A stretch of 64,000 bases of DNA, from positions 248,001-312,000 of the forward strand of contig CBFFRQ010000018.1 in the NCBI GenBank assembly GCA_965644315.1. Direction: 5' to 3'. Source of the stretch: Caecitellus pseudoparvulus (Eukaryota; Protista; Bigyra: Bicosoecida). A program made the translations under genes and the position numbers. The notes beneath the pieces were generated by a model, which made no database searches, was not told the DNA's origin, and saw only the letters and a list, made by a program, of their open reading frames with translations. The stretch's first letter is position 1, and each line of letters opens with the position of its first letter. Below, piece by piece: positions 2,149 to 8,180 of the stretch.

Positions 2149-2576
2149 GCAGCCCTGAAACGCAACGAAACGCAGGCCGGCAAGGCAGGTCTGCAGAGAC
2201 CAGTTTCAGTGAGCCTGGCAAGGTCTCACGTGGAGCGCGTAGGGGCAGGGGGGATGGGTCTGGATTGGCATCGAATTTTAGCGAAAAGATGACGGCCGTT
2301 GGCTCTGGGCCGCCTGAGTGCGAAGCTTGTCGATGAGCTGCGCAGGATTGCAGCGGAGAGCTGCACAGAGCCCCAGCGACACTGCCAACTGCCTCGCGAA
2401 ACCAAACTGAAAATCACACGAGTGTTGCACAGGGGGGTATTTGCAACGGGGAACCGCTTTCTACCTTGCCCGCGCTGCCCAGGCAAGGTGAGGGCAGCAC
2501 GTAAGGCTCACTTCCGGGCGCCTCAGCCCAGCCTTCGCGGGCACGGCACTCCTCACAACGCCTGGCTGAGGGTGCG

Positions 2577-5500
2577 ATGGCGGCACAGTCAACAGGGAGC
2601 AGCAGTGGAGTGAGGTTTTGCTACCTATTCTCTGCGCCACTGGTGAAGGGGGCGCAGTCAGGCAGCAGCAAGTTTGTCGCGATCGATCGCCCGCTCAACT
2701 TGGCCCGGGAGCTCAAGTCGCTGCAGTCCACGCTGGAACACACCCATCGCCAGGTGGAGTGGAAGCAGGCTGTGGCATCACCCTCAACCTTCTCCAAGGT
2801 GCTTGCTGATTCCCCAGACATCCTGCACTTTTCAGGTGAGCGGGCTCACTGGCGTTGCCTGCGGAAGTAGGCCCAGCTTGCTGTCAATAACCTCGGGACA
2901 ATTGCCGCTTACGCTCGCAGGCCACGGCGAGAAGGGGTACCTGTGCATGGAGGATGACTCTGGTGTCCTCTGCCCCGTGCGATCCTCTGTCATTGACACC
3001 TACCTGCACTGGCACGGAGGGGCTCCTCCAGTGGTGTTTGTAGCAGCCTGCCACTCAGAATCCGTTGCACACGCTTTCGTCAACGCAGGGTGTACGTGTG
3101 GCTTCCTGCACAGCAGCCGATCCTTCCCTGCGCATGCTTGTCCCTCCACCCCCCTGCACAGGCCCCCATGTCATTTGCATCAACCAGCAGGACGAAGTGA
3201 ACGACGTGCGTGGGCCAGCATCACCCCCACAACCACGCAGCACCAGCGCCACATGGCGACCCCCCTCCGTCACAGGAAGCGGCGCTGAAGTTCGCCAGAG
3301 AGTTCTACAGCATGCTCATCGTGCGTCCTCCCGACTGGCCACCCCCGTACCGCTTCGCTGCACCCCCACCCCCTCCCCCGCTATCGTACAGGGGAGCGGA
3401 AGGGATGTGGGGAGCGCCTTCTTCCTGGCAAAGAACACAGTGAGCGTAGAGATGGGTGCCAGGAGCCCCGCTGAAGTCAACAAGTTCCTACTGCTGCCGG
3501 AACCACCACTAGGGCCGGGCCAAACGAAGGACGACCCGGCGTGGCGTGACGCCTTGCGAGGCATGCATCGCCTGGAACTGACGAAGATCTGCACGCCTGG
3601 AAAGTTCGTACAAGCGACAGGCGCCAGGTCCAGCACTCTACCAGACATGCCCCCTACGCTGTATGGGCGGGATTTGCGACTGCAGGAGCTGTACCGGTCC
3701 TTGACGCGGTCGGGGGAGCCGCTGAACTTGGTGACTCTGCACGGGCCTCCGTCGGTCGGCAAGAGTGCCCTTGCCACAGCCCTGGCTGTGTACACAGCAC
3801 AGCGCCTGGACCTTCAGCAGCGCTTTAGCAATGTGTGCCTCGTGGATGCGGCGGCCGTGGAGCTTGACCTGTACACCGACAGGCAGGCTGCTGGCCAGCC
3901 TCGGGTGTGGGGCGCGATCCTGAGTCGCATGGGCCTGCCGCCCAGCCTGGCCGTGGAGCAGCCGCAGACAATCGTCCATGAACTGGCCAGCAAGCTCCCA
4001 CGGGCTCTCTTCGTGCTGACTCGCTTGGACGTGGAGGGCCGCCGCGAAGTGTCTCAAGCTGTGGTGGAGGCTGCTCTCGCCTTCGCCAGCCGAGTGCTGC
4101 AGCCGCTGGTGGGGCACCACTCCTGTGCAGCGGTCCTCACATCGCGTCGTGAGCTGGAACACGGTTGGCGGGTAAGCAACACTCAGAGCAAGAAGCTGGA
4201 GCCCTTGCAGTCGTTCTACGCTGGCCAGATGCTGTGCACGAAGTTCGCGGTGCAGAACGCGCCGCAGAGCACTTGGGCGGGGCTAGTCCCGCGCTCCGCC
4301 CTGAGCACAGCATCCCGCAGGCCGCGCAGGGACATTTACTTTGAAGAGGTGGGCAAGCACCCGCTCCTGCGCATTTGTGGCGGCCTGCCCGGCGTCATCG
4401 AAGCGTTCGTGCAGGCCAGCGGAAATAAGTCCCTCCACGAAACGCTGGACGAATCCAAGGTGCTGGCTGGCATGTGCATGCTAAAGACCGGGCAGCCCAT
4501 CCCCCCCGGCACCATGCGTGCCGAGCTGGAAGCTGAGGCCAAGGCACGGGTGGACAGCGAACGGAGCACGGCCGCTGCGGCAGCTGCTGGTGGGGCGCCC
4601 AGCACGCACCCAGGCCCTGGTCTGAGCCACTTACCGTCAAACCCGCCCCACATGAGCGGGGCTGCCATGTCAGGCTTCCCAGGCATGTCTGCGTTCTCTG
4701 TGGGGTCTAGCTTGAGCCGAGTCCCCTCCATACCCCCCCAGTCCTTCCACTTGACCCAGTCCAAGTCTGATGGTGAACTGCCCAAGAACCAAGTGGAGCA
4801 AGACGTGCCTGAGCTGTGGGCTGCACTCACAACAGCCCTGGGCAGCAGTCCCCAGGCACAGTCTGTGTGCCTCCCACCCGCCAGCGACGCAGGCGTCCTG
4901 TGGAGCCTGGTGCATGCCTATGCCACCGCCCGCCTGCCGCATTGCCTGGGCGTGCGTGCCCTCACAGAGCACGATGTGAGGGTCATGACACTGTGGATAT
5001 ACCAGTGCGCATCGCAGCGTGACAGGGCGGGCAGGGTGTTGCTCTCGCAGCGCGACCTGCGAGCTGCCGTGGAGTCACGCCTCATGGTGTGGGTGTGGAT
5101 GATGAAGATAAAGGTGCGGCACCACTGGACCCGAACAGTGCATGGGACACAGACGCCCTACCTGCACGGTTTCCTGGACAAGAACGAAGCCTGGACCTTG
5201 CTGCAGCAAGCAGGCAGTCAAGACGGCACCTTCCTCCTCCGCTTCTCGGCGAGCGACCCCAAGTCCATCACCATGACGGTGGCCACAGAACACGGACAGC
5301 AGGCCTGGAACTGTCGACTGTCGCTGACAGTGAACACAGACCGCACCAGTGCCCACCGGTGCTACTGGGAGTACACCTGGCGCGGCGCTCACGGAAAGCT
5401 GCACGTGAACACACTGGACGAGTTTGTGGAGCGACACCGCGACCAGCTACGGGAGCAGCTGCACTTTTCACGCAGCACATACGCAGATGACGCGTTGCCT

Positions 5501-5794
5501 GCACACTTGGCCAGTGGCGGCATGCCTGCCTCGCACCACTCCAGGTTTCCGAGTCACGGACCGCACCTGGCCTCGTCCACATCCATGCCAATGGTGCCCG
5601 GCATGCATGGCGGCGTGCCACCAGGCGCACTTGCCACGCCAACCCTGGCGCACTCGGGCTCTGCCATGGCGGGGTTCCCGGGTGGGGCGTTCCAGCCCCC
5701 CGCCATGGAGCGGTTCCCCTCCGGGGACAGTCGGGCCAGCAGCCACGCCGAAGCCGGGCCCCGACACGGCGGCACCGCCCCTCCAAACTTCTAG
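2577..5794 (+). CDS. CHAT (caspase/HetF-like) protease + NB-ARC-type STAND ATPase + STAT-like linker-SH2 protein; exons 2577-2835, 2921-3091, 3162-3205, 3276-3320, 3392-5794
   Basis: Splicing four GT-AG introns keeps frame and rebuilds the CHAT motifs DILHFSG|HG (His 2923-2925), VFVAACHSE (Cys 3049-3051) and AALKFAREFYSML. ATPase motifs: LYGRD, Walker A GPPSVGKS (3743-3766), LTSR, LEPL, CGGLP. SH2 region: YLHGFLDKNEA...DGTFLLRFS (5225-5248). Confidence 0.85.
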
Positions 5795-5954: not shown

Positions 5955-8180
5955 ATGGGAACCACACCCTCCAAGGCCCTGCACAAGGCCGCCAAGAGTG
6001 GCGACACGGAGGGTATTGAAAGTGCACTGCGAAGTGGTGCATCTCTTGATGCTGTGGAGGATGGGCGCACGCCCCTCATGACGGCAGCCAAGTCAAACAA
6101 GCCTGAGATCCTTTCCCTGCTCCTCGCGAAAGGCGCATCAGACTACCGCGACAGCAACCAGGAGCTCGCCCTGCACCAGTACGTGGGGACCTGTCGCTTT
6201 GTGTCCAAGCTCACCTGGGCTGGGGTTTGCACCTGCCTTGGTGCGCTGTGCTGGCTTTGCATGGCGTGTGAGGAAGTGTCCCAGAAAGTCCCGCTGGCTC
6301 TCGCGGCCGGCATGGCATTCCTTCTTGCACTGGCACACGTCCTGGCGCACTCCCCCCCCCTTCCGCAGCGCTGCAAGGGCGGGATCTGTTGCATGTGCTG
6401 CCGTCCTCATTAACCGCGGCTCAGGTGCGTGGCACTGCGCCAAGAGGCGCCTGCCTGCTTGCGAGGATGATGTGCTTGTTGCCCCCTGGCCTGCGCAGAC
6501 CACTTCGCGAAGAACACGTCAGGGCAGCGGCCCATCCACGTCGCGTCCTCTCGAGGCAAGACCGCCGTCGTGCGGTACCTGGAGGCGGCGACCTGCCCCT
6601 TCTTCCACGAGGTGCAAGTCAAGTTCCCCATCTTCATGTCGCTGTGCACGTGGCACGAGCGGTGGCTGGTGGTGCACCGGGCCTGCCCACACGACAACCC
6701 CATCGTGTCCCGCAATGACACCCTCGTCTACGTCTACACCAGCTACAAGCACTGCACGCACTACATGTCCCTGCGCAACGCCGCCGTACACGTCCTGCGC
6801 ACCAACGAGTCCGGCAGCGTCATCCGCTTCGACCTCCTGAGCAGCGTGACCCCCAACGCCCCAGGCGGCAGCAGGCAAGCAGACCACGCCGTATCACGGG
6901 TGCAGTGCCGCGCCCCCATCCACGTGTTCGAGTGGCTGAGGGATGTCCTGCACCCCGACTTCGGTGCGGGCCGGGGCCCCCGCATCGACCCCAGGACCCA
7001 CCGGGCCATTCTGCCGCCGTGGGCGCTGCGCCACGCCAACGGCAACCGACGGGCCCAGCAGCCGAACCCCATGAACATTGTGCGAGCTCGAGCACGCGCG
7101 GGCAGTGCCGGGCAGGCGGCACAGCCGACGCCGCAGCTGGAGGCAGAGGTGGTGGCGCCACCCCCCCTGGACGCCGGGGCGGGGGGGGCAGCAGCTGGGA
7201 ACGCAGGCGGCGCCATGCGCCCACCAGTGCCCACCTCGCCCGAGGCTGCAGAGCAGGCCTCCGTCGCGGGGTACGCAGCCGTCCTTCCCTCCATGGGCGA
7301 GCGGGGGGCAACGGCGCTCTTCGGCGCAGGTGCCCGGGACAGCTACAACACTGCCGCGCAAGGCAGCACCTCCACACGCTCTGCTGCCGTGGCGCCGGCG
7401 CCTGCCGCCCCTGCCCGCACCAGCAGCCTGTACCCTGCCCTGGACAGCCAGCAACCAGTCCTGGCCCCCATGATCGTGCAGCCGGCCAGCCCACAGGCAC
7501 CGGCGCAGGGGGCTGCCGCGGGGCCCTCCCCACGCGCGAACGTCCTGGATGTGACGGTGCCTGAGGGCTCTGAGGAGCCGCCCCCTGCGCTCTGTTGCGT
7601 CTTGACCATGGATCTGTACCAAGACCCCGTCGTGGCAGCGGATGGGCACACGTACGACCGAGAGGCCATCGAGACATGGCTGGCAACCCATAACACGTCT
7701 CCCAAGACCAACGAGACCCTGCAGCACAAGCACCTCATCCCCAACCATGCCATGCGTGGGCAGGTGCTGGACTGGGTGGATGCTCAGCGGGCAGCGGCGG
7801 CACAGGCAGCCCCGGCTCCCGCCCCTGCCGCCACCCCGGTGCCGGCGCCTGAACCGGAGCCCCTTGTCCCAGACAAGCTCGGGTACGATGCTTCCCACCA
7901 TGCCAGTCCCGTCCCTGTGGCGCCCTCAGCGCCTCCCCCCGTTGCGCTGGACGCGTACGCAGTGGATGAGGGCGCGGCGCAGGGCCACAGCGACGAGGAG
8001 GACCGGCCAGCAGAGCCTTCCCTGGCCGCCCGCGCTGCTGCCGCCCAGCAGTACGACGAACTGGACATCTTGACCATGGACTTTCCCTCGGTGCCGCAGC
8101 ACAGTGTGCAGCCGCCCAGGGAGAGTGCGCAGGCGGCACCCGTCACTCGCTCGCAAGGCACGTACGCAGTGCTGGACTGA
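5955..8180 (+). CDS. N-myristoylated ankyrin-repeat + U-box E3 ubiquitin ligase (3 exons)
   Basis: Start MGTTPSK (myristoylation pattern). Ankyrin repeats ALHKAAKSGD, GRTPLMTAAK, ALHHAARAGS (spliced) and RPIHVASSRG. U-box PPALCCVLTMDLYQDPVVAADGHTYDREAIETWL...SPKTNETL...LIPNHAMRGQV. Confidence 0.85.

Follow-up and report, generated by a model that had tools for sequence, protein, structure and literature searches.

The window analysed here is a stretch of 64,000 nucleotides of the bicosoecid Caecitellus pseudoparvulus (contig CBFFRQ010000018.1, positions 248,001 to 312,000 of the forward strand). Its GC content is about 65%, and the assembly from which it is taken comprises 30.6 Mb in 215 contigs. 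A gene on the forward strand at 2577-5794 of the window encodes, in this order, a CHAT-type caspase-fold domain whose identification is indirect, a STAND-class P-loop NTPase, a low-complexity spacer, a STAT-like linker with an SH2 domain, and a tail with a conserved Ser-Thr-Tyr-x-Asp motif. It can be described as a STAND protein of the NLR-like kind whose input or adaptor module is new. This combination of domains suggests, and does not prove, a protease switch controlled by phosphorylation.

The gene is comprised of five exons separated by four canonical GT..AG introns of 70-85 nt, and its coding sequence amounts to 2,919 bases, or 973 codons. The first start in frame is the ATG at 2577; it lines up with the beginning, MAAL.., of a homologue encoded on the metagenome contig L008, which belongs to another organism. 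The 5' untranslated region extends at least over 2419..2576, where it is covered by RNA contigs of the runs X10 (2419-2648) and X1 (2440-2836). Exon 1 (2577..2835) encodes the N-terminal part of the CHAT domain and ends with ILHFS and the first base of a Gly codon. Intron 1 (2836..2920, 85 nt) is supported by an X1 contig that ends at 2836 with a 10-nt overhang, CCACGGCGAG, that matches the first bases of exon 2 exactly, and by the homologue on L008, which lacks an intron at this place. Exon 2 (2921..3091) encodes the core of the CHAT domain with the catalytic His and Cys. Exon 3 (3162..3205), which ends with PHVICINQQDEVND, contributes a strand and a loop, and exon 4 (3276..3320; EAALKFAREFYSMLI) a helix. 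The three remaining introns are all removed in contigs of both X1 and X2: intron 2 (3092..3161, 70 nt; joint 3091>3162), whose position is kept in L008, intron 3 (3206..3275, 70 nt; joint 3205>3276) and intron 4 (3321..3391, 71 nt; joint 3320>3392). Exon 5 (3392..5794) is an uninterrupted frame of 800 codons and the stop, and holds the end of the CHAT domain, the NTPase, the spacer, the linker-SH2 module and the tail.

The gene is transcribed and spliced, and it is under purifying selection along its whole length, low-complexity parts included. Metatranscriptome and metagenome runs of seawater and marine origin contain DNA of the window. The whole gene is tiled by RNA contigs, and introns 2-4 are spliced out in two metatranscriptome runs, X1 and X2. 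Within exon 5 a single X1 contig spans 3806-5795, from the NTPase through the SH2 domain to the stop, and other contigs tile the rest. The runs X1 and X2 are flagged 'RNA? (probably DNA)', yet they carry correctly spliced contigs of this gene and must therefore contain RNA. An arrangement of two separate genes is ruled out by the spliced contigs that join exons 2-5 and by the frame that runs on to the stop. The original prediction, made from the sequence of the locus, of one spliced gene with a CHAT domain split over four introns is thus borne out, by RNA joints for introns 2-4 and by the overhang and the intronless homologue for intron 1. All of the motifs quoted in it are present where it placed them: HFSG|HG across the junction of exons 1 and 2, AACHS in exon 2, and YGR, GPPSVGKS, TSR, GGLP, VRALTEHD, WVW, HW, YLHGF and GTFLLRFS within exon 5.

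The evidence for selection comes from a near-identical contig of another strain (L001, 98.3% identity). It differs from the window at 34 exon positions, 31 of which are third codon positions (30 of 33 in exon 5), and its 296 nt of intron differ by 8 substitutions and an indel of 11 nt. Purifying selection is indicated because the differences in the exons fall mostly on third positions while the introns vary more. The differences between the RNA contigs and the window also lie almost exclusively at third positions, in the low-complexity spacer as elsewhere, and therefore point to natural strain variation.

The CHAT family (Pfam PF12770) belongs to the clan CD caspase fold and has a cut-off of 24 bits. 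The locus 2577-5794 was not picked up when the whole genome was scanned with PF12770, and the evidence for the domain was gathered exon by exon, with the exon peptides searched singly. In the homologue on L008, in which exons 1 and 2 are contiguous, the corresponding piece has three Pfam matches in all, to CHAT (20.9 bits, E 2.8e-4; below the 24-bit cut-off), Peptidase_C25 (gingipain) and caspase C14. Two open reading frames of the genome contain Pfam-certified CHAT domains, with 44.3 and 38.3 bits. The five exon peptides are colinear and contiguous on one of these paralogues, L006, at residues 866-930, 947-996, 999-1011, 1012-1025 and 1027-1067; it is this segment, 866-1067, that matches CHAT with 44.3 bits. 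Exon 4 also matches residues 111-123 of the paralogue L007. The 64-kb window, as 1,528 six-frame fragments, was searched in full with a CHAT profile made from the two paralogues only. The top three matches were exon 2 (E 2.9e-5), exon 1 (E 8.6e-4) and the start of exon 5 (E 3.1e-3), exon 4 was sixth, and the exon matches follow the order of the profile, which is well beyond chance. The match at the start of exon 5 (profile positions 175-210) places the C-terminal end of the CHAT domain, ..AEVNKFLLLPE, at 3392..3502.

A family alignment (A6) matches the one solved 'CHAT domain-containing protein' (8tl0) with an E value of 7.5e-14; LHF.GHG and ..AC.. align. The catalytic His is the codon 2923-2925 (GHG) and the catalytic Cys the codon 3049-3051 (AACHS). 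The pair LHFSGHG/VFVAACHS of the window protein corresponds to LHFSGHG/VFVSACQS in L007, LHLCCHA/VYLAACSS in L006, LHYSGHG/VFVSACHS in the homologue on L008 and LHFIGHG/NAC in 8tl0. A CHAT-type caspase-fold domain with an intact His/Cys dyad, as originally predicted, is thus supported indirectly, through the paralogues and the homologue.

The STAND-class P-loop NTPase occupies 3659..4420. AAA_16 is the sole NTPase family of Pfam above its cut-off (33.2 bits versus 32.6). The domain contains the P-loop GPPSVGKS (3743-3766, Lys codon 3761-3763), a Walker B-like motif FVLTRLD with Thr for the usual Asp (4010-4030), the sensor-1 motif TSR (4139-4147) and the GxP motif GGLP (about 4379-4390). GPPSVGKS, LTSR and GGLP are kept in the homologue and in the STAND domains of the paralogues, and the T-S-R of sensor-1 is common to all of them. 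The end of the CHAT domain, the LPxxPxxL.GR segment before the P-loop, the P-loop and G.P align with a CHAT-STAND-TPR paralogue. The closest language-model clusters of the NTPase are NB-ARC/NACHT/nSTAND1 (0.97). The profile A3, built from two sequences (the complete last exon, NTPase included, and the homologue), matched no solved NTPase chain, and PADLOC gave nothing above P-loop-level noise for the NTPase. The original prediction had named this domain NB-ARC. Its assignment to the STAND NTPases stands; the narrower label was dropped, because Pfam NB-ARC (PF00931) reaches 14.3 bits against a cut-off of 23.5 and covers the P-loop region alone. Hydrolysis may be altered, but nucleotide binding is plausible. 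An Asp three residues past the Walker B Thr is invariant in the window protein and its homologue.

A spacer of about 80 residues, rich in Ala, Ser, Pro and Gly, separates the NTPase from the linker-SH2 module (4544..4789). Its sequence is poorly conserved, yet a spacer is present in the homologue. It is followed by a helical STAT-like linker (4790..5119) and by the SH2 domain (5120..5467), which is identified by Pfam, by sequence matches in PDB and by its predicted fold. Pfam SH2 (PF00017) matches with 30.3 bits against a cut-off of 21; the sequence matches in PDB include Grb14 and Grb10 (E 4e-5) as well as an SH2 domain of SHP2. The AlphaFold model of the C-terminal module from the single sequence was unusable (pLDDT 45). 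The model made from an alignment of 36 linker-SH2 sequences has a pLDDT of 87 and a pTM of 0.83, the linker being residues 1-110 of this model (pLDDT 73-92). The predicted SH2 domain superposes on those of Grb7 (Z 13.3, root-mean-square deviation (rmsd) 1.8 A, 95 of 103 residues) and Grb10 (Z 13.2, 1.9 A, 93 residues). In a fold search of the whole module against 48,161 PDB chains, which was independent of Foldseek, the top matches were all SH2 domains. In the 36-sequence alignment the phosphotyrosine-binding (beta-B5) Arg of FLLRFS (codon 5240-5242) is invariant, and in GTFLLRFS this Arg and the Ser after it, the G-T-F-L and the R-F positions are invariant or nearly so. The sequence matches and the model together make the identity of the SH2 domain solid.

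The resemblance to STATs extends into the linker. Only two of the 48,161 chains aligned over the whole linker+SH2 model (residues 1-230): Dictyostelium STATa (1uus; Z 12.3, 175 residues, chain 485-672) and human STAT6 (4y5u; Z 11.5, 179 residues). A nine-sequence family profile (A1) placed the linker+SH2 regions of STAT5B, STAT5A and STAT6 first, with an E value of 7.7e-16 for residues 348-513 of STAT5B. A profile of the window protein and its orthologue alone reaches the SH2 domain of STAT5A (E 0.006) and no further, so the homology of the linker is transitive and structural. The best match of the whole module in the ESM Atlas was a plant SHB cluster (TM 0.57, 181 residues), and the nearest cluster in language-model features was likewise plant SH2. 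These results agree with the original prediction of a low-complexity spacer followed by a linker and SH2 domain like those of Dictyostelium STATs, with the binding Arg intact.

STAT-type SH2 domains are defined by the lack of strands beta-E and beta-F and by a split alpha-B helix (PMC12470777). Between beta-D and alpha-B, the predicted model of the window protein shows two strands (residues 191-196 and 203-206), apparently a lineage-specific insertion, and it superposes almost fully on Src-type SH2 domains. Because of the two extra strands the term 'STAT-like linker-SH2' is justified and a strict 'STAT-type' less so. A STAT transcription factor is ruled out by the lack of STAT_alpha and STAT_bind matches in Pfam and by the NTPase and spacer that lie upstream. 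A metagenomic protein of 909 residues (P0004) consists of three tandem linker-SH2 modules, each with GTFLLRFSE, and has no other domain.

The SH2 domain is directly followed by a conserved Ser-Thr-Tyr-x-Asp motif (5474..5488, Tyr codon 5480-5482), a candidate phosphorylation site. S695, T696, Y697 and D699 are invariant in the homologue within an otherwise poorly conserved tail, and this conservation is the ground on which we infer that the Tyr may be phosphorylated. The remainder of the tail (5489..5791) is of low complexity, rich in Pro, Gly, Ser and His, and ends with PPNF; the terminal PPxF is conserved.

The homologue, P0002 (750 residues), was the one true relative found by HMMER with the linker-SH2 query among 1.84 billion representative proteins (41% identity, E 3.9e-29). 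The CHAT exons are colinear upstream of it on L008. The exon peptides matched with E values of 8e-17 (exon 1, at 1058-1309), 8e-11 (exon 2), 9e-5 (exon 3, at 1546-1587), 5e-4 (exon 4, at 1654-1698) and 1e-6 (start of exon 5). Exons 1 and 2 are contiguous there in one frame, ..VLHYSGHGEP.., introns 2-4 are in matching positions, and the homologue has one intron more. Since the CHAT exons are colinear upstream of P0002, the whole architecture is conserved in a second organism at 36-41% identity. The two proteins share the catalytic His and Cys, GPPxVGK, LFVLT..D, LLTSR, G.P, GTFL.RFSAS and S-T-Y-x-D. A search of the window's genome with P0002 matched only the locus 2577-5794, and P0002 therefore behaves as an orthologue. 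Its flanks are non-syntenic, since the window gene has a different neighbour. Directly downstream of P0002, at L008:4704-10294 (+), lies a very long open frame of more than 4,500 residues, which runs off the locus. Other searches for relatives returned little: the SH2 and NTPase regions as queries of their own genome each matched just this locus, searches for homologous proteins with the 800-residue exon 5 and with the linker-SH2 region found just a near-identical metagenome frame (P0001), and two metagenome scans with the profiles A3 and A2 found no relative.

The genome contains several other proteins with related parts. The first CHAT paralogue (L007:319-5913, minus strand; G000:C43) has a frame of 1,865 residues with CHAT, AAA_16/NACHT and TPR_MalT. 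In the second (L006:5480-9952, minus strand; G000:C56), CHAT and AAA_16/NACHT/NB-ARC lie within a frame of 3,298 residues. Both keep the canonical Walker B Asp, unlike the SH2-bearing gene. Further SH2 domains occur in Spt6, in a small EF-hand/SH2 protein, and in a frame of 1,587 residues with TIR_2 (64 bits), NACHT/NPHP3_N and a weak C-terminal SH2 (L003:3087-7847, plus strand; G000:C73:37086-41846). This weak SH2 reaches 16.7 bits when the protein is searched and 22.1 bits in the scan of the genome; it matches the SH2 domains of SOCS4/6 around EGSFLMRNTS (E 0.03). At L005:3740-5347 (+; G000:C68), a protein of 536 residues combines an EF-hand-like linker and an SH2 domain that lacks the Arg (GTFAVTF) with a canonical SH2 domain (FLFRLSES). 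Since CHAT-STAND-TPR, CHAT-STAND and TIR-NACHT-SH2 coexist in one genome, effector and C-terminal modules appear to be shuffled around STAND cores. The description of the SH2 domain as occupying the sensor slot, given in the original prediction, is fair, as a paralogue carries TPRs at the same C-terminal position. The genome also has at least 143 matches to the PK_Tyr_Ser-Thr kinase family, the best with about 210 bits, and the TKL-type kinases among them have large multidomain frames. In Dictyostelium, which has no classical tyrosine kinases, TKL kinases phosphorylate STATc (PMC4196871).

Four known systems resemble parts of the window protein. The CHAT-STAND-TPR type, widespread in bacteria and represented here by L007, has the same CHAT-to-NTPase unit, with ..AExxKFxLL.. 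at the junction, LPxxPxxLxGR, the P-loop and GxP all aligning. It has a TPR sensor array where the window protein has a spacer, a STAT-like linker-SH2 and a Tyr-bearing tail, and the paralogues have Asp in Walker B where the window protein has Thr. In the apoptosomes of Apaf-1 and CED-4, assembly of the STAND NTPase activates caspase-9 or CED-3 by proximity. The window protein similarly pairs a STAND NTPase with a caspase-fold protease, and by analogy the same logic of activation may apply. In contrast to the apoptosome, it fuses the protease to the NTPase, has no CARD recruitment and no WD40 domain, and has an SH2 domain as the proposed trigger. Pfam found no repeat (LRR/WD40) or death-fold domain in exon 5 or exons 1-2, which sets the protein apart from NLRs in the strict sense and from Apaf-1. 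With the STATs (Dictyostelium STATa, human STAT5 and STAT6) it has in common the linker+SH2 as a whole, GTFLLRFS and a Tyr soon after the SH2 domain; it differs from them in lacking coiled-coil and DNA-binding domains, in the two extra modelled strands and in a Tyr closer to the SH2 domain. The plant STAT-type proteins SHA and SHB of Arabidopsis (Gao et al. 2004, cited in PMC3670131) likewise show a linker-SH2 outside the opisthokonts, in an organism that lacks classical tyrosine kinases, but have neither a protease nor an NTPase. PMC3670131, with reference to Gao et al. 2004, takes the linker-SH2 to be the ancient core out of which STATs developed. Within the genome, the TIR-NACHT-SH2 gene has a similar plan, with an N-terminal effector of a death or defence type, a STAND NTPase and a C-terminal SH2-like region. 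It differs in its TIR effector, its clear NACHT domain and its weak SH2 of another subtype, which the linker-SH2 profile does not match.

STAND and NLR-like proteins are known with repeat sensors (LRR, WD40, TPR), and SH2 domains are known as readers of phosphotyrosine in kinase signalling and in STATs. Full-text literature searches found no paper in which 'CHAT domain' and SH2 occur together and none that describes a STAND NTPase fused to an SH2 domain, in line with the original prediction that the architecture is not known to have a functional description. The nearest mention concerns metazoan Death/TRADD-N proteins, whose variable C-terminal domains include SH2 (PMC8195603).

The domain order, the expression, the conservation and the key residues of this nuclear gene are shown by the data above; its mode of action is proposed. 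In the reading that we propose, and to which we give an even chance, the gene encodes an expressed, cytosolic, NLR-like protein of the order CHAT-STAND-spacer-linker-SH2-STYxD that works as a proximity-activated protease driven by the binding of SH2 to phosphotyrosine. The phosphotyrosine read by the SH2 domain would be that of a partner or the conserved tail Tyr of another copy of the protein. After phosphorylation, the molecules would pair reciprocally through SH2 and phosphotyrosine as in STATs, or form chains head to tail. Such docking or pairing, together with oligomerisation of the NTPase domains, would bring the CHAT domains together, and the proteases would be activated by induced proximity, as caspases are on the apoptosome. 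The likely writers would be the many TKL or dual-specificity kinases of the genome, comparable to the Dictyostelium TKL kinases that act on STATc, and the output would be limited proteolysis, possibly cell death or defence. Docking or pairing is likelier than classical autoinhibition of the NOD by the sensor, because the spacer is flexible and about 80 residues long and the Walker B motif is altered; the spacer and the Tyr behind the SH2 domain point to docking, or to dimerisation in the manner of STATs, no less than to autoinhibition of the classical kind. A more specific form of this scheme is put forward tentatively: a phosphotyrosine-gated 'fused apoptosome', in which a TKL kinase would phosphorylate the tail Tyr or a partner, the STAND scaffold would pair through SH2 and phosphotyrosine, and the CHAT protease would be turned on.

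Several points weigh against the scheme of a phosphotyrosine-driven protease. Phosphotyrosine binding, tyrosine phosphorylation, oligomerisation and proteolysis are all steps that we infer. SH2 domains can read other ligands; that of Spt6 binds phosphoserine and phosphothreonine. The PF07714 profile by which the kinases were counted does not tell true tyrosine kinases from TKL kinases, and the classical tyrosine phosphatase family has eight weak and partial matches in the genome (23-30 bits). The Walker B motif reads ALFVLTRLD (LFVLTHCD in P0002), with Thr where the paralogues have Asp (VLD/VLDD), and the NTPase may therefore not cycle like a classical STAND switch. The long spacer counts against a sensor that directly autoinhibits the NOD. 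Exons 1 and 2, searched singly, had no match in Pfam, and sequence searches of PDB with exon 2 alone and with the exon 1+2 piece of the homologue gave chance-level matches. Finally, only two members of the family turned up among 1.84 billion representative proteins.

Some of these points are also compatible with other explanations. The SH2 domain might act as a docking adaptor that only tethers a constitutively regulated protease-NTPase to a tyrosine-phosphorylated scaffold, for example a receptor kinase or a site on the cytoskeleton. In that case phosphorylation would decide the place of action of the protease and not its assembly, and the result would be ordinary signalling proteolysis and not immunity or death. 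A flexible spacer of this length is more easily explained by a tether than by an autoinhibitory sensor, TKL-type kinases with large multidomain frames are numerous in the genome, and the neighbouring genes (for RadA and a U-box protein, described below) give no pointer to defence. We nevertheless consider this adaptor unlikely, as the conserved Tyr right after the SH2 domain and the STAT-like linker fit self-pairing, and STAND cores with exchanged N- and C-terminal modules are typical of conflict or death systems. The GTFLLRFS motif bears on a further possibility, that the SH2 domain reads phosphoserine or phosphothreonine as in Spt6, or an unphosphorylated or acidic motif, or is purely a dimerisation surface, with no link to tyrosine phosphorylation. 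Since its Arg and Ser are invariant or nearly so across the 36 sequences, as in the phosphotyrosine-binding STATs, and since the fold superposes on phosphotyrosine-binding SH2 domains with an rmsd of 1.8 A, such a function is improbable, even though the partial phosphatase matches include no clear classical tyrosine phosphatase and the alpha-A basic residue is not conserved (Lys in the window protein, His in P0002). To our knowledge, the plant STAT-type SH2 proteins also have no established phosphotyrosine ligand.

The rarity of the family raises the question of whether the gene is an evolutionary one-off, a product of lineage-restricted domain shuffling with a dead or irrelevant protease or NTPase and a role as a scaffold alone. 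One relative in 1.84 billion representatives, none in the two metagenome scans, and a Walker B motif that is degenerate in both family members are in keeping with such an origin. It is nonetheless very unlikely in view of the strong purifying selection along the whole frame, the transcription and correct splicing in environmental RNA, and the retention of the catalytic His and Cys, the P-loop Lys, the SH2 Arg and the tail Tyr at 36-41% overall identity.

If the phosphotyrosine-gated 'fused apoptosome' is real, it would mark the first time that an SH2 reader serves as input to a death or defence protein of the NLR-like kind, and phosphotyrosine signalling would be wired to regulated proteolysis in a marine protist that is neither animal nor amoebozoan. 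The same input would then have a second effector arm in the TIR-NACHT-SH2 gene of this genome. A conserved and expressed fusion of this kind would link the origin of phosphotyrosine/SH2 signalling with that of the NLR/apoptosome-type death machinery, two subjects commonly studied separately. It would also place the ancient STAT-type linker-SH2 module, which has so far been discussed for STATs, plants and yeast Spt6, in a marine protist and in a new functional context. With protease, switch and reader predicted in one polypeptide and a candidate phosphorylation site beside the reader, the protein offers a simple and testable system.

The genes on either side of the SH2-bearing gene give no functional hint toward its role. 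Directly upstream, on the opposite strand (475-2148), is an open reading frame for a bacterial-type RadA/Sms protein with a Zn ribbon, AAA_25 and Lon_C. About 160 bp downstream, on the same strand, a gene at 5955-8180 is composed of an ankyrin-like N-terminal frame and a frame with a U-box (PF04564) at 6570-8180.

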